From: Bugula neritina
Lineage: Eukaryota > Animalia > Bryozoa
Length of the DNA stretch: 64,000 nt
Assembly: GCA_964035545.1 (NCBI GenBank)
Contig: OZ037773.1
Span: 4,617,751-4,681,750, forward strand
Reading direction: 5' to 3'
Within the stretch, counting starts at the first letter, position 1. Each line of letters opens with the position of its first letter. The position numbers and the translations under genes were made by a program. The notes beneath the pieces were generated by a model. The model was given only the letters and a program-made list of their open reading frames with translations. It was not told the DNA's origin and made no database searches. Shown here in pieces: positions 10,901-53,200 of the stretch.

Positions 10901-13215
10901 AAAAACAGCAAAAATAACTCAAGATGAATCAAAATTCGGCATCACAAAAAGAAGTATAACGGCATGCTTTCTCAGTAGCAGACGCAGGCAAATTAAAAGT
11001 TAGCGATCGAAGCTTGAACTGTGTTTGCCGTTTGCGCAATTGCAGCTGAGCAATTAGCAAAGAGACATGCAATATTTGCTTTTTAGCCCTAAATTAATTT
11101 TCCAAGATTGTGATAAGAAGTTCTATAGGTATAGTTCAAAGTAAAGCCAGATATGTTACTTTGGCTTCAGAAATTAAAGAATTGTGATTTTTTCCAATTA
11201 ATGCACAAAGTATTATATATCCTACTTAAGTATAATCTTTAAGCTGGCACCTTTATATTATATTCACAATTAAAATGACAGTTATTCTTAAAAATATCTT
11301 ATTTCTCAAGAGTACAAAGCAAACAGTTAAAGGAAAGCTTAAAATGTATTTTACTAATTGTATTTATTTTATTTTCAGGTGAAGGCGATTTCTTAGATCA
11401 GCTATATTCCGATGTGCCAACATCTTACCACCAACATAAAAGATTTAGCCTTCCATCTTGTTTAGCTCTTTGCTCATTCAATCAGTCATGCGTTGCAGTG
11501 TCATATGACAAAGATAAATTAATCTGTTTTCTTTCTGATGAACTGAAAGTGTTGAACAACTCAGAACAGACCAGTAAACTCTGTTTTGTTAAGAAGATAT
11601 TTGCAGAAGATGTGATAGTTTATGGATTCTCCACAAATCTTGCCAAAGGTGAAAATATTTCGCTGTATATAAGACAATGTTTTATAAGTTAATCACCATT
11701 TTTCAATAACCTTGTTACAGATGCTTTATATATATATGATTTTGCAGAACTGGGAAAAAACAAATTGGTTAAATTATTTAGAAAGTTGGAATATAATATG
11801 AAGGATTTTAAAATACATTGTTTTAATAATTAGTGACCTATTATTGACCTACAAAGGTTTTATGTTGGTGGAACTGTTTTCTAAATTTTAGATAAACCAG
11901 CAAGCTTAAGCAGTTTCTTTGCGTCACAGCATTCTGCATCTAAAGCTATTGATGGCATATATCTCCCCTCTGAAAATGGATTGAATGATTATTCTAGTTT
12001 AGCACACAGCAATAAAGAGCTATCACCATGGATACAAGTAGATCTGATCCTCAATCACTTTGTTGAAGGTGTCAAAATTTGGGACAGGTCGGAACATGTT
12101 AATCAGGGTAAGTCAAAAAATTAACTCTTTGAATATTGCTTGCTGTCCAGAGAAGAGTTCTACATGACATTTATGCATATAATAAAATGAATGTGCATAA
12201 CGTAACACACACCCACACACACACACACACACACACACACACAATTGTGTATATATATTTATATTGTGCTGTACATACTGTATGTATATATTTATTTACT
12301 AGCTGTCTGTACATATAATGTATATATGTATATATACATATATACATAATATGTATATATGCATATGTATATATGCATATGTATATGTATATGTATATAT
12401 GTATATGTATATATATATATACATAATATGTATATATGTATATGTATATATGTATATGTATGTGTATATGCATATGTATATGTATATATATATATATATA
12501 TATATATATATATATATATATATATATATATATATATATATATATATATATATATATATATATATATGTGCGTGTGCGTGTGCGTGTGCGTGTGCGTGTG
12601 CGTGTGCGTGTGCGTGTGCGTGTGTGTGTGTGTGTGTGTGTGTGTGTGTGTATTATATGTGTGTGTGTATATTATATATATATATATATATATATATATG
12701 TGTGTGTGTGTGTATATATATATATATATATATATATATATGTGGGCCATGGTACTCTGTTCTGTGCTGATGAGGGGACAAATCCCGAAACAGCTGCTGT
12801 CCACAGATTGAGATATATATATATATATATATATATATATATATATATATATATATATATGTGTGTGTGTATATATATATATATATATATGTATATCTAT
12901 ATATATATGTAGTTGTTTGTTATTTCTAGCTTAGATTATTCACAATTTGCTTGTGTCTGTTCATTTTATATAGTGAACAATGACCGACTAGCCAATGTTA
13001 GAGTAACAGTTGGTAAAACTGACACCAACTTTGCCAATCCACCAGAAAATGAGATCTGTGACTACCTTCCTGGACGACCACCAGCAGTTATATTTATGGT
13101 TACATGTCATACTAGAATGTATGGTAGATTCGTTAGAGTAACAGCTGTAGAAATAAATGATTTTTTCAACATTTATGAATTAGATATTCATGGACAAGAA
13201 CCCTTTCGTGATTGA
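7913..13215 (+). CDS. Secreted PAN/Apple-PAN/Apple-F-type lectin (fucolectin domain) protein, ~347 aa
   Basis: Exons 7913-8057, 10525-10695, 11379-11648, 11892-12107, 12974-13215, all with phase-1 GT-AG introns. Signal peptide [10 protein letters not shown]; two C-x3-C-x5/6-C...C PAN units; F-type lectin motifs [44 protein letters not shown]. Confidence 0.85.
8655..8900. repeat. Inverted-repeat flanks around two (TA)n arrays
   Basis: GTAGAAATAAAAGTGTGTTTATAT at ~8656 and its reverse complement (one mismatch) at ~8873-8896 enclose (TA)n - 55 bp - (TA)n. Confidence 0.7.
10763..10850. repeat. (TG)n/(GTGTGC)n microsatellite
   Basis: Visible tandem repeat. Confidence 0.95.
12205..12910. repeat. 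Compound (CA)n/(TA)n/(TATG)n/(TGCGTG)n microsatellite block in lectin intron 4
   Basis: Visible repeats. This block is the source of the spurious YI/CV-repeat ORFs. Confidence 0.95.
12761..12807 (+). ncRNA. Type I hammerhead ribozyme (retrozyme fragment 12742-12815)
   Basis: Stem I TCTGTG/CACAGA, core CTGATGA, stem II GGGA-caaa-TCCC, GAAA, stem III CAG-ctg-CTG (contains palindromic CAGCTG), GTC cleavage triplet ending at 12801. Confidence 0.85.
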
Positions 13216-13756
13216 AATTCTGATGATGTTGTACATTATTAAAATGTTTGTGTGTAACATAATATATTTGCGCGTGGGTGTGTGGGTTCGTGGGTGTGTG
13301 GGCACGTGGGTGCGTGGGTGCGTAGGTTCATGTGTGCGTGTCATTCAAGTTTTAATAATATTCACTAAACTATGATCAACAAAATAAATAGATATATCGA
13401 CAATAACCTAATTTTTCTCGTGCAAATGTAACACAAAAATGACTAAATTAGATTTTTAGTTTCTAAAATTGGCCTTTGTCATTGAGTAGTCGCATACATT
13501 CTATCTTATTCAACAGTAGATTTGTAACTGAAGTTTTAGTTGAAGCAAGAGAACAAAGTAGTTATGCAAACGGGTGTTCATTCTTTTCCCAAATTTAGTT
13601 ATAAGACTTGAAATTCTGAAAACTCGTTGCATCTTAATTAGGGACAAAACATGTTCATAATTATGTTAGCTAGGGTTCACCCATCATTTTTTCTATAAAC
13701 CATCATAACTGCTTAAAAAAACCATCTTTACATCTATATATTATAGTAGTTTATTA

Positions 13757-50274: not shown

Positions 50275-53200
50275 TTATCTTGGTGTGAAGATTATGCCGT
50301 AAGATTTAGGGGCACTAATCACTGATACCACAGGTTCTGTAGTGACCTTTGACCCTCCTGGCAGATGAATGTTGTACCTTTGAAGAAAGTTGACAAAAAA
50401 TAAAAACAGCTCAACTTTCGCAAGACTTTCCCCAAGGCAAGCTCTTCTACCTGCAAAATCCGAAAACAAACAAGATTAAGACATAAACTATTATATATAC
50501 AAAACTCACACAAATGTTATATAACTGCTATTCTTGTAAAAACCCCTGCTAGAAAGGGTTTTATAAATTGGGCTAAGGACTTTTTCAACTGTAACACAAG
50601 ACCAATTATGACTGAGTTCTTTTTCTAGCATCACCAATGGCCTTTACTGGCGATCGAACGCTGACCTTGGGTTTACTAGGTCGACGCGCTAATTCCCTTA
50701 GACCACAGCTGCTCTTTCAAACTATTATATATGAACGCAAAAATGTTTTATCAATACTTTCTTTCATATGATAAGAAGTAAAACAAGCTTGTGCATCAGT
50801 TGTACTGTAACAGAGAAGTATTTTAAATTGACAAATTGTAACCTTGATCGTGAATGTAATTGCTATTTACCGATGCCAAATGGAATTGTTTTCTTCTTTT
50901 TGAGAGTTATGTCCCCGGTGAGGTAACGCTCAGGTTTAAATTTTTCTGGTTCTTCAAAAACTTCGGGATCATAAAGTACGGAAGCCATATTCATGAGTAG
51001 ATCGGATTCAGCAGGTATCAACTACAAATATCTTAGGATATTAAACACAAAAGAAGAGAGTTCCATAATTTTAATCCAAAGTAGGTTGAGAATACATACA
51101 CTGTGTCAAGAGTTTAAAAGTTAACAATTGCAATGAAATTGTTTTTAGACAAGCAAAGAATAGGCCAGTTTTATTTAATGTCTGCTTCCTCACCATGCCT
51201 CCGACATAGATGTCTTTCTCAGCATTGTGAGGTAGAGAGCTGTTTACAATATTGGACAGTCTTTGAGTCTCAGTCAGTACAGCGTCTGTATATGGCATGT
51301 TAAGATGATCTTTATATGTTGGTGGTCTTTGGCCTACAATCATTGTTGGTAAAATATATATTGAGATTGAGATTGAAATATTATGCTCTCATTTAATGCT
51401 CAGCAATGACATTAAGTGATTCAGCTCTTTCACCATGGTCACAAACTTGAGCTGCTAACATTTTGCAAGGCTCGTGACTCCTAGGTGATTCCTAGAGTCA
51501 CTGGAGCTCTCTGGCCTGGTTTTACACACCTTTTAAATATGCTTCAGTAAAACTATAAGTTTCTACTATTGCGTATTGGCTATGGTACTCTGTTCTGTGC
51601 TGATGAGGGGACAAATCTCAAAACAGCTGCTGCACACAGATTGGTGTGTGTGTGCGTGCATGCGTGCGTGCGTGTGTGTGTGCGCGCACATGTAAAGATA
51701 TGCCAACTGATAATTAGTGCAAATTTCAAGATCTCAAACAACACATAAACACACTCACCAATATTGTCATCAATTTCTTTTTGCACTTTTTCTAGCACAT
51801 CTGTATTTTTGCACAAGTAGAGTAGTGCCCATCTTAGCGTAGTTGATGTCGTTTCTGTTCCAGCTGCATACAACTGAAAGCACAACTGGGCGGCATTCTC
51901 AGCTAAAAGAATTTTTAGTTTATTTTAAAGTCTCAACTTGTATTGAAGCTCTAGAGTTAGGAAGTCTCAAGAGAGAAAATTTTTGACATCCAAAGGAAAA
52001 ACATACAGACGGCACAATACCTAATAGCACAATGCAAGTATGCTTATTACTAAAGTGTCTACATGCAGCTAGAAGGAAATAGCATTGTTCCAGTTTAGTT
52101 AAATCCCAATACCTGTTAAAAACTTCATTTCATCGCTTGATATGAGATACTGATCAACCAGACACTGTGGGTTGTTTGCGTCTAACTGCTGTTTCCTTTC
52201 TTCAATGCACTTCTTGATTATAGGCATAGCAACACCCAGAAAGTTTCTTCTTTGTTTTCTAACTGATGGAAAGATGTTTCCGATTAGCGGTAAGTTTGTT
52301 AACATTCTGAATTTAAGTCCTCCATTTATTACTGAATTCAAGACATCCGTAATAGCGGTGAATGCGTCATCTTCGTAATCAAACCTTTTGGCAAATAAGA
52401 GCTGTGATACAACATTAGCAGTGGCCTTGGGAAGGTTACTGTACATGTCAAGTGGCTTTCCTACTGATGGCTCGATGTAGTGTTCAATGTACTTTTCTAT
52501 TTCTTCAACAATTTCTGGTTCAAAAGCAGCTCTGCCCATTCCTCTGTCTCTCAAAGTTAGCAGAGAGAATGTTCTGATTGCTTTCCAGTCGGATGGGTGG
52601 GCAAAAAAGAGTCCTGTATTCAGAAAGATTAAAATATGGTTACTGCAACTACTTATACAATGAATAAAATAATGACTGTACTTGCTTTGTTGTTTACTTT
52701 GCTTTGTAGTTTGCAAGTAAAGTCTTTAAATTAAAACATGTGAACAATTATAAATTACTTTCGATACAAAACCCTAAACCCCCCCCCCTTAGTCAAAAAC
52801 AGAACACTACAGCACAGCCTTGCACAATGGAAGAAACTTATGTTTTTACCAAATCATATCGAAAACATGTGCATAAGGAGGGGGAACAAATTCAATATAT
52901 CAAAGTGCATATACGCACATATATACCATATATAACAAGTATGTGATACTGAAATATTTTTACACATGTATATGAGAGAACTATATTGTAATTTAAAAGC
53001 AAATATTACAAGTTATATTGTATTTACCCCTTTCAGATCTGCTTTTCATATATTTCGTGAAAGTAATGGCCCGTGAACTTGTATGATCTGCTGAGGCAAT
53101 TAGCAGTTGGTGCATTGCATCATATCCCGAGATGACGACTCTTGGATATCCAGCCATCCTCATGGTGAACACCTCAAGAGACAAAACAAATAATATGTTA

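Follow-up and report, generated by a model that had tools for sequence, protein, structure and literature searches.

Schistosoma Sm-alpha and newt satellite 2 are short, abundant repeats that carry a type I hammerhead ribozyme, are transcribed, and self-cleave; Sm-alpha is dispersed in a SINE-like manner and has Pol III promoter boxes. The closest described systems are the metazoan non-LTR retrozymes, which consist of a noncoding unit of 170 to 400 nt with one type I hammerhead, have no LTR, PBS, or PPT, and accumulate mainly as circles (Cervera & de la Pena 2020, PMC7229834). The LTR retrozymes of plants are nonautonomous retroelements whose hammerheads make circular RNA intermediates; their hammerheads are of type III and lie in LTRs, and they have a PBS and a PPT, produce target-site duplications of 4 bp, and have Gypsy elements as partners (PMC4918200). 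Of the 57 retrozyme families in Xenopus, 24 have homology to the termini of Penelope-like elements (Li, Clavereau & Pollet 2026 preprint, 10.64898/2026.07.22.740005), and a head-to-head inverted layout is typical of Penelope-like element insertions (PMC8557442).

We analyzed a 64,000-nt stretch of the Bugula neritina genome (here, referred to as the window) that contains copies of a 271-nt repeat. The repeats very likely belong to the animal non-LTR retrozymes, a class already described: the unit is short and noncoding, it has a type I hammerhead and unit-to-unit junctions, there is no adjacent coding region, and a Penelope-like element co-exists with it in the genome. The original prediction of a retrozyme-like family is borne out on these points. 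As in the described metazoan members (PMC7229834), GC content is low (43%), the predicted circle is highly self-paired, tandems and a co-existing Penelope-like element are found, and the unit turns up in contigs of RNA-labelled libraries. With vertebrate retrozymes the repeats share co-occurrence with Penelope-like elements and a prevalence of dispersed monomers over multimers (10.64898/2026.07.22.740005). Small size, abundance, and a type I hammerhead are traits that they also have in common with Schistosoma Sm-alpha and newt satellite 2. They differ from plant LTR retrozymes (PMC4918200) in having a type I hammerhead, no LTRs, and no target-site duplications among the insertions analyzed, and in that we propose a Penelope-like rather than a Gypsy partner. 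We estimate a probability of about 0.72 for our main reading, which joins two claims: this is a young non-LTR retrozyme family, and it spread by target-primed copying from a template that was uncut at the ribozyme site.

The 25-nt core CTGATGAG-GGGACAAATCCC-GAAAC occurs at five sites in the window with three or fewer mismatches, whereas shuffles lead us to expect none. Two of these sites, 12767(+) and 27059-27035(-), match it perfectly, and those at 34305, 34576, and 51600 have one or two mismatches. All five predicted copies were recovered with their sequences as described and their extents refined, including both perfect type I hammerheads and the copy that runs from hammerhead to hammerhead (Table 1). 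Two of the six hammerheads in the window are intact.

Table 1. Retrozyme copies, hammerhead motifs, and Penelope-like sequences in the window
Feature	Position	Strand	Remarks
Retrozyme copy	12742..12816	+	75 nt, 0.28 unit, 5'-truncated; surrounded by (TG)n/(TA)n microsatellite
Intact type I hammerhead motif	12761..12807	+	Cleavage triplet GTC; predicted cut after C12801
Inverted head-to-head partner of Penelope-like fragment	16143..16238	-	Without the last ~35-nt tail; ends (TA)n
Penelope-like element 3' end, 5'-truncated	16234..16358	+	Compared with L062 and L017
Older retrozyme copy	23421..23574	-	~0.55 unit, 5'-truncated, 93% identical
Full retrozyme copy (reference)	27011..27294	-	1.05 units
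Second intact hammerhead motif	27019..27065	-	Same sequence as 12761-12807
Retrozyme copy	34296..34613	+	1.17 units with a hammerhead at either end; period 271
Old retrozyme copy	51362..51642	+	~1.0 unit, 89% identical, core mutated

The reference copy starts with CAGATTGAGATAT and terminates in CACAGATTGAGATAT, which is followed by (AT)n; between the upstream (AT)n and its 5' end, there is a filler of 27 nt. The shortest copy is almost wholly hammerhead plus a 15-nt tail, and its identity to the reference is 100%. An internal deletion removed the hammerhead from the older copy, the terminus of which (...CACAGATTGAG) precedes (TA)n. Both cores are mutated in the copy of 1.17 units (the first reads AAAA in place of GAAA, and the second CTGATAA in place of CTGATGA), and its 3' end has approximately 20 nt more of degraded unit sequence and no microsatellite. 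The old copy has an ATTGAG stutter at its 5' junction, and its 3' boundary has moved to AGATTG, followed by (TG)n. As had been noted, four of the five copies end in a microsatellite, (TA)n in three and (TG)n in one. Inserted copies are dead on arrival and then decay.

By direct reading, the motif at 12761-12807 consists of helix I (TCTGTG/CACAGA), the core CTGATGA, helix II (GGGG/TCCC with loop ACAAA) followed by GAAA, and helix III (ACAG/CTGT with loop CTG). Every core position was found (CUGAUGA, G10.1-C11.1, GAAA, A15.1-U16.1, and C17), as were all three helices, and the canonical structure evaluates at -10.1 kcal/mol. Helix II had previously been drawn as G plus GGGA/TCCC; we redraw it as GGGG/UCCC, running from G10.1-C11.1 through a G-U pair. 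The suggested comparison with Rfam Hammerhead_1 (RF00163) gave no match even at E ≤ 10, and Rfam called no hammerhead at gathering score; therefore, we identified the motif by inspecting the core and helices directly. At E ≤ 10, we obtained the RAGATH-1 hammerhead with 15.2 bits (E = 2, threshold 56.3), in a local alignment that was the only one consistent with the core, and Hammerhead_II with 12.2 bits (threshold 37). These sub-threshold scores likely result from the short helix III with its 3-nt loop.

Given this short helix III, the ribozyme may need a dimeric form for cleavage. Helix III is also nearly a palindrome, so the retrozyme and Penelope-like elements would have in common a possible "double hammerhead" mode of dimeric form. 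Compared to the Penelope-like motif, helix III of the retrozyme is longer (4 bp plus a 3-nt loop) and its 6-bp helix I has a distal extension; of the two, the retrozyme hammerhead comes nearer to canonical type I. The unit proved to be noncoding and strongly structured, in line with what had been noted, with a longest stop-free stretch of 45 codons when a trimer was checked and a circular minimum free energy of -89.1 kcal/mol, compared to -59.6 ± 4.5 kcal/mol for shuffles (z = -6.6, 70% of bases paired). When the circle is folded at minimum free energy, some of the hammerhead core is paired otherwise than in the canonical structure.

We searched the species' own 216-Mb genome with the unit and obtained 735 first-look candidates. 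The 71 scored matches were 93 to 100% identical to the reference copy, most of them 97 to 100%. The genome-wide copy count that had been suggested, run with a 48-nt hammerhead-plus-tail pattern, gave 391 near-perfect matches and none in the control, and we estimate approximately 400 insertions genome-wide. Judged from these sequences, the family is young and active or recent, in agreement with the original prediction. Dispersed single 3' ends occur on all large contigs. Genome-wide, 358 3' junctions run into ATATAT, compared to 59 internal unit-to-unit junctions; arrays of two to four units exist, and loci with tandems are a minority. Probe counts fell from 417 at the 3' end to 311 in the middle, 155 in the 5' part, and 59 in the next unit.

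These counts bear on whether the repeats are a common satellite that was amplified as DNA, with a hammerhead-like motif that is fortuitous or vestigial. Tandem arrays are indeed present, and the hammerhead repeats of newts and crickets were first described as satellites. However, the excess of dispersed 3' ends over tandem junctions, the graded 5' truncation, and the single fixed 3' end all argue against a satellite, and a rough estimate is that a complete core with three helices would arise by chance approximately 0.003 times in 216 Mb, which leaves this explanation extremely improbable. The prevalence of solo or 5'-truncated dispersed insertions also contrasts with the long arrays of the described metazoan retrozymes (PMC7229834), and the unit sequence is species-specific. 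The (TA)n target and the fixed end of the insertions (see below) set the family further apart from those members; PMC7229834 does not mention a microsatellite or describe such insertion details.

We read the anatomy of the insertions from 30 loci, which were the best BLAST matches and hence a nonrandom sample. Among 26 resolved arrays, the 3' end was constant and the 5' start variable, with lengths of 0.28 to 3.07 units (the longest retrozyme arrays reach about 4 units), and nearly all arrays were inside (TA)n or at its edge. The common 3' end is located 12 to 15 nt beyond the predicted cleavage site, indicating that the template was uncut there. Of the 21 arrays of approximately one unit or more, 14 had their 5' start between -13 and +11 nt relative to the cleavage site (p = 2e-10, binomial); ten of these 14 clustered 5' ends were at +2 to +11, and the other four crossed the cleavage site by 5 to 13 nt. 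Where the target is (TG)n, the boundary on the 3' side moves to AGATTG followed by GTGT, which matches the prediction of priming by microhomology. Retrozyme copies adjoin microsatellite or unique DNA directly and contain no LTRs and no coding partner sequence, and some insertions are head-to-head pairs (read from coordinates only). No target-site duplications were found at the analyzed insertions, so the downstream (TA)n may be either part of the target or a tail brought by the template. Taken at the level of sequence, this anatomy bears the marks of target-primed reverse transcription with an RNA template that ran unbroken over the cleavage site and would be a religated circle or an uncleaved multimer.

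Given the motif and the published behavior of the class, we propose that transcripts with at least two hammerheads would cut themselves after GUC to give unit-length RNAs, which a host ligase could close into circles. The template would be RNA continuous across the cleavage site; the continuity is seen in the insertions, and we favor a religated circle, the circularity of which we infer, over an uncleaved multimer. Nicked (TA)n would pair through microhomology with the AUAU of ...GUC followed, across the cleavage site, by CACAGAUUGAGAUAU, and so prime reverse transcription. Such priming would give every insertion the same 3' end, 12 to 15 nt past the site. The cDNA would then stop variably, and the sequences and counts display the corresponding 5' truncation with a strong peak after approximately one full turn (or two, three, or four). 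Some insertions would end as head-to-head pairs. The enzyme would most likely be a young Penelope-like element with a reverse transcriptase and, at the C terminus, a GIY-YIG nuclease.

The identity of the template is where the original prediction, copying from a circular template, held in part: the position of the 3' end upholds a template uncut at the cleavage site, and the circle itself does not follow, since a linear multimer or read-through RNA with a (UA)n tail fits equally. With a linear template, the donor would be a read-through transcript or partly processed multimer in which an upstream hammerhead makes the 5' end, the last hammerhead stays uncut, and the (UA)n tail comes from the donor locus; the repeat would resemble a SINE with a microsatellite tail, and circles would be a by-product or absent. 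Every donor copy precedes (TA)n, so a read-through transcript would automatically bear a target-complementary tail, and at four loci (L015, L025, L006, and L027) there is unique DNA directly upstream and (TA)n downstream only. A hammerhead-made 5' end would also account for the ten clustered starts lying just inside it, and a ladder of partly processed multimers for integer multiples of 2.0, 3.0, and 4.0 units. On the other hand, four clustered 5' ends cross the cleavage site, the (TG)n insertion has no (TA)n tail, one ribozyme would have to cut upstream yet not downstream, and the published members of the class are mainly circles (PMC7229834). We regard the linear template as credible but doubtful.

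That a circle was the actual template is a tentative proposal, somewhat short of probable. We put forward with rather more reserve the fuller reading, in which the anatomy would be the footprint of target-primed reverse transcription once round a circular RNA by the co-resident (TA)n-specific Penelope-like element. It draws on the fixed priming at AUAU, on 5' ends located 3 to 27 nt beyond one turn (or two, three, or four turns for multimeric circles), and on a 3' boundary that follows the type of microsatellite. If true, it would be direct evidence, at the level of sequence, that animal retrozymes retrotranspose from circular and not from linear RNA, and it would define a young enzyme-and-passenger pair to test.

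The co-resident Penelope-like element has 151 matches in the genome, mostly 94 to 99% identical in protein and many of them 5'-truncated, with open frames of up to 734 aa without a stop. Its C-terminal ORF has the nuclease motif VYKITC..C..YIGETGRRL..EH..H, and its relatives have PF26215, with or without PF00078 and PF01541. Three independent 3' ends (at L062, at L017, and at 16143-16358 in the window) are all in (TA)n and have a minimal hammerhead and an inverted partner. The fragment on the forward strand of the window is broken inside this minimal hammerhead and terminates in ...GCTCGTAAAGATAT-ATTTAAAT-(AT)n. By analogy, this young element is probably the partner enzyme of the retrozyme, given the same (TA)n target, truncation, inverted-pair architecture, and possession of a hammerhead. 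The retrozyme resembles Penelope-like elements (PMC8557442) in its (TA)n target, 5' truncation, head-to-head inverted copies, and hammerhead near the 3' end, and it differs from them in encoding nothing, with no reverse transcriptase or GIY-YIG ORF within or contiguous to it. Its approximately 400 insertions display unusually clearly how a retrozyme entered TA microsatellites, probably via a Penelope-like retroelement.

A further question is whether the repeat is an element in its own right or belongs to an autonomous Penelope-like element, as its pseudo-LTR or its end. Such elements bear hammerheads near their 3' ends, heavy 5' truncation would leave that end alone, and by their coordinates the two kinds of copies are often within a few kilobases of one another. 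However, blastn found no similarity between the retrozyme unit and the 3' UTR of the young element, the one compared among Penelope-like families that include more divergent ones (matches of 42 to 63% identity), and the AGATAT with which both end is too brief to carry weight. Arrays run unit to unit without an ORF between, at 59 junctions and for up to about 4 units, and copies longer than one unit run into another unit, never into coding sequence. The unit is therefore very unlikely to be a repeat at the end of some longer coding element, the outcome that had been named as fatal to the original prediction. The family also departs here from the Xenopus families with Penelope-like termini (10.64898/2026.07.22.740005), as no similarity to the 3' UTR of the young element was detectable and the retrozyme and Penelope-like hammerheads are unlike in sequence.

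Mobilization of the unit by a LINE rather than by a Penelope-like element is unlikely. The genome holds 2192 first-look reverse-transcriptase-domain candidates, including very young LINE families with identical 961-aa ORFs, and 5' truncation and microsatellite tails are also traits of LINEs and SINEs. Nevertheless, among the young LINEs the most abundant one terminates in (CAAA)n instead of (TA)n and has nothing in common with the tail of the unit, whereas all three resolved Penelope-like 3' ends are in (TA)n. Penelope-like elements are characterized by hammerheads, insertion into (TA)n, and inverted pairs arranged head to head (PMC8557442).

We read the RNA-labelled runs as contigs, in which RNA ends, circularity, and cleavage are not visible. 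A 220-nt contig of the oligo-dT metatranscriptome X12 (record 9) is unbroken across the unit junction, and a contig of X3 (record 23) also spans it; these junction contigs are ambiguous because the 59 or more genomic tandem junctions would yield identical contigs. Runs X1 and X3 could be DNA at low coverage. For run X2, labelled "RNA-Seq," the summed k-mer depth of the unit was 5e3 to 4e4, compared to 0 on unique flanks.

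We read the five places at which the original prediction had located hammerhead repeats and mapped them against the best copy, and on both counts its description was accurate (see the table). Allowing up to three mismatches, the window contains five occurrences of a 25-nt pattern covering the hammerhead core and helix II, and shuffled sequence contains none. The 3' flank is a (TA)n microsatellite in three copies and (TG)n in one, while the 3' end of the copy starting at 34296 lacks a microsatellite.

Direct reading of the two hammerheads that had been called perfect recovered all conserved positions. 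In both, helix I is UCUGUG/CACAGA (6 bp, with an internal loop and distal extension beyond) and the core reads CUGAUGA; helix II pairs GGGG with UCCC around loop ACAAA and is followed by GAAA, and helix III is ACAG/CUGU with a 3-nt closing loop. Only helix I is open, helices II and III both being closed, which makes this a type I hammerhead. Its GUC cleavage triplet puts the predicted scissile bond after C12801 on the + strand and gives predicted termini ...GCUGUC and CACAGAUUG. The longest reading frame in the unit spans at most 45 codons. Folded as a circular monomer, the unit is far more stable than its shuffles (z = -6.6; 70% paired). In the suggested Rfam check, the motif fell below Rfam thresholds: searching the whole window at the gathering threshold returned a tRNA-like match only and no hammerhead, and searching three stretches at E<=10 gave no significant hammerhead, the one carried by the Penelope-like element described below being likewise unrecognized. 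The sole alignment consistent with the core was a weak local match to the RAGATH-1 hammerhead (15.2 bits, E = 2). For an isolated 71-nt segment, the canonical structure (-10.1 kcal/mol) is not the minimum-free-energy fold (-16.3 kcal/mol). Self-cleavage is a predicted activity. Paired as a double hammerhead, in which helix III is long and intermolecular, two copies reach a computed -36.9 kcal/mol versus 2 x -13.3 kcal/mol, a mode known for Penelope-like element hammerheads and amphibian retrozymes.

Coordinates of retrozyme copies and host-gene features in the window (27011-27294 is the reference copy), and of young LINE copies in the B. neritina genome (G000)
Feature	Location	Strand	Description
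Retrozyme copy	12742-12816	+	75 nt, identity 100%
Retrozyme copy	23421-23574	-	~0.55 unit, identity 93%, ribozyme partly deleted
Retrozyme copy	27011-27294	-	1.05 units
Retrozyme copy	34296-34613	+	1.17 units, hammerhead-to-hammerhead, period 271
Retrozyme copy	51362-51642	+	~1.0 unit, identity 89%
Cytochrome P450 exon	52102-52716	-	E = 3e-19
Rhodopsin-family GPCR ORF	55704-56654	+	E = 5e-8
Young LINE copies	Loci L034, L035, L037, L041, L048, L051 (e.g., G000:C1:16826030-16829782)		

Contig C9, on which the window lies, belongs to an assembly of 216 Mb. Using the unit as a genome query gave 735 first-look candidates, and 71 scored matches, spread over all large contigs and often arrayed with period 271, had identities of 93 to 100% (most 97 to 100%). 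Exact-pattern counts provide firmer numbers than this candidate search: a 48-nt hammerhead-plus-tail pattern matched 391 genome sites with up to two mismatches (control, 0), and 358 3' ends genome-wide read ...GCTGCTGTCCACAGATTGAGAT and then ATATATAT, versus only 59 sites that run on into a next unit. We therefore rejected satellite DNA as an explanation; the family is mainly dispersed, with short tandems a minority. For annotation, the family accounts for many short hammerhead matches and TA-flanked repeats dispersed in the genome. Metagenome contigs, a collection that may exclude own-genome records, gave no match to the hammerhead with either exact or free-helix-II patterns.

We resolved 26 arrays from 30 fetched loci and the window. 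The 3' end was invariant in all 26, reading ...GUC↓CACAGATTGAGATAT (↓, cleavage site) followed by (AT)n; the 5' end fell anywhere in the unit, with array lengths of 0.28 to 3.07 units (the longest array seen in the genome search had 4.0). Genome-wide probe counts from 3' to 5' along the unit were 417, 311, 155, and 59, the gradient expected of 5' truncation, although subfamily variation at the probe sites could contribute part of it. The 5' ends are nonrandom: 14 of the 21 arrays of at least about one unit start within -13 to +11 nt of the cleavage site (p = 2e-10), and the per-nucleotide ending rate increases approximately 16-fold towards the unit start. Because the fixed 3' end is located 12 to 15 nt past the cleavage site, the copied RNA was uncut there. 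In the only case with a (TG)n target, the 3' boundary had moved to AGATTG followed by GTGT, as priming by target/template microhomology would predict. A search of seven loci gave no target-site duplications, and in some insertions the element lies at the upstream edge of the adjoining (TA)n tract.

We put the probability that the unit is an animal non-LTR retrozyme, of the class in PMC7229834, at about 0.9. Insertion probably proceeded by target-primed reverse transcription at (TA)n, from an RNA template continuous across the ribozyme site. The original prediction had the family copied from a circle. Its fixed 3' end upholds a template uncut at the cleavage site; that a circle was the actual template is a reading we favor tentatively. 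Measured from the priming site, all clustered 5' ends lie a few to 27 nt past one complete turn, and four extend across the cleavage site; for described members of the class, circles are the main form that accumulates (PMC7229834). With a circle, the downstream (TA)n would be the target, and multimer circles would explain insertions of two, three, and four units. A linear template would be read-through RNA or a multimer processed in part, with a (UA)n tail from the donor, and would instead have brought in the downstream (TA)n as that tail. It explains about as well why the 3' end is constant, why insertions lie at microsatellite edges, and why unit numbers form an integer ladder, but the four 5' ends that cross the cleavage site cannot come from a linear RNA whose 5' end was made by a ribozyme, and we regard a linear template as a serious though lesser possibility.

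Stutters of the unit's first bases occur at the 5' junctions at window 51362-51385 (ATTGAG-ATTGAG-ATTGAA...) and at approximately 1216-1240 of locus L029 (ATTGAGAT-ATTGAGAT...), and they look like a reverse transcriptase slipping or realigning at the end of a copy. A 27-nt nonrepeat filler (window 27295-27321, TCCAGTCACAATTAGTCTTTCGCCC...) stands between the full copy's 5' end and the (AT)n upstream of it; it may be extra nucleotides captured at the junction. A long compound (GCGT/TG)n-(TA)n microsatellite surrounds the truncated copy (window 12292-12912) and produces four spurious ORFs of 150 to 170 aa.

To examine RNA, we placed Logan contigs from all runs on window:26700-27600. An oligo-dT metatranscriptome (X12) contains a 220-nt contig that passes unbroken from the 3' part of the unit over ...GTC↓CAC into the unit start, and run X3 contains a similar contig of 89 nt. 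Junction-containing RNA exists; because tandem copies in the genome give an identical junction, circles and cleavage are predictions. In X2, a 260-Mb run labeled RNA-Seq, the summed depth of the unit was 5e3 to 4e4, roughly 1 to 3% of the run, for a family that makes up ~0.09% of the genome, with nil coverage of unique flanks; summed contig depths are a poor measure of expression. The retrozyme is very probably transcribed. We did not accept X1 and X3 as RNA evidence, since their depth was no greater than that of low-coverage DNA of a ~700-copy repeat. A different short repeat at window 27506-27567 was covered by contigs from all four runs (depth 1 to 330); their loose ends point to numerous genomic contexts, and the repeat is thus probably a further transposable element.

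Genome searches with Pfam models did not single out a candidate source of the mobilizing enzyme: GIY-YIG (PF01541) gave a single unrelated match (locus L031) and misses the nuclease of the Penelope-like element, and RVT_1 was swamped by LINE and LTR elements. The commonest young LINE was rejected as a partner, its 3' end, (CAAA)n, having nothing in common with the unit. A degenerate pattern for the nuclease motif YIGETGR gave a single match, leading to an ORF of 252 aa that combines the thumb-like end of a Penelope-type reverse transcriptase with a GIY-YIG nuclease bearing the CCHH residues. Pfam hmmscan assigned this fragment to no family; by Atlas features it matches reverse-transcriptase-fragment clusters carrying HTH_animal and GIY-YIG (score 0.97), and its sequence relatives carry PF26215, one also PF00078. 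The ORF has 151 genome matches, mostly 94 to 99% identical and many truncated from the 5' side, with open frames of up to 734 aa without a stop; several copies form opposed pairs. Candidate full-length copies include those at C3:16071891, C1:34921316, and C7:8070269.

We examined three independent 3' ends of this element (loci L062 and L017 and window 16143-16358). In L062, the 3' UTR is ~375 nt counted from the stop codon and includes a minimal hammerhead, CUACU-CUGAAGA-U-GGGUAC/GUACCC-GAAA-UAUC↓AGUAG. The element ends in ...GTAAAGATAT-ATTTA(A)AT within (TA)n, and the inverted partner is 5'-truncated and lacks the last ~35 nt. A (TA)n preference and the inverted-partner arrangement are on record for Penelope-like elements (PMC8557442), and the B. 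neritina 3' ends have that published architecture. The retrozyme and this element have in common the target, the truncation pattern, their youth, and a terminal AGATAT, and, judging from coordinates, head-to-head pairs as well (candidate retrozyme pairs, C3:3688129(-)/3688717(+) and C3:22926145(-)/22926219(+), with a further candidate at C4:12591013-12591735). They share no sequence longer than AGATAT, a comparison made with the young element only; more divergent Penelope-like families in the genome match at 42 to 63% identity. L063 and L064, contigs with a 90%-identical Penelope-like copy, contain no retrozyme. The shared features make the Penelope-like element the probable partner of the retrozyme. 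At G000:C3:16580736-16581250, to judge by the coordinates, a retrozyme copy (+) and a Penelope-like copy (-), both 5'-truncated, seem to adjoin directly in head-to-head orientation. The two may form a chimera produced by one integration event, which, if true, would tie both elements to the same machinery.

Retrozymes have already been described, so the existence of this family is unsurprising. The class is published, as are the proposals that it is copied by rolling circle and that its partner is Penelope-like, and the B. neritina family is a species-specific addition. New from this locus are an unusually clean insertion signature and, within a small genome, a concrete candidate for the partner. 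B. neritina is a clean system in which to ask what enzyme mobilizes the retrozymes of animals and whether their circular RNA serves as template. Its genome is only 216 Mb, it has ~400 very young insertions with sharply defined ends in a simple target, (TA)n, and a likely partner is at hand in the Penelope-like element, which is just as young, has long open frames, and matches the family in target and insertion architecture. A retrotransposition assay or a survey of polymorphic insertions should therefore be easy to design.

An uninterrupted 1441-aa ORF (window 38460-42785, +) between two retrozyme copies matches no Pfam family, and we rejected it as a reverse transcriptase; by Atlas features (score 0.98), it falls with clusters of ~1500-aa hypothetical eukaryotic proteins, some with DUF6589, and it is probably a gene of another mobile element. 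The P450 exon and the GPCR ORF are host genes between retrozyme copies. At window 6911-6981 (-), Rfam reports a tRNA above its gathering score (36.8 bits) and ARAGORN reports none; several stem mismatches suggest a tRNA pseudogene or tRNA-derived repeat. Also present in the genome are dozens of near-identical copies of a very young LINE family whose 961-aa ORFs are identical and whose 3' tail is (AAAC)n/(CAAA)n.
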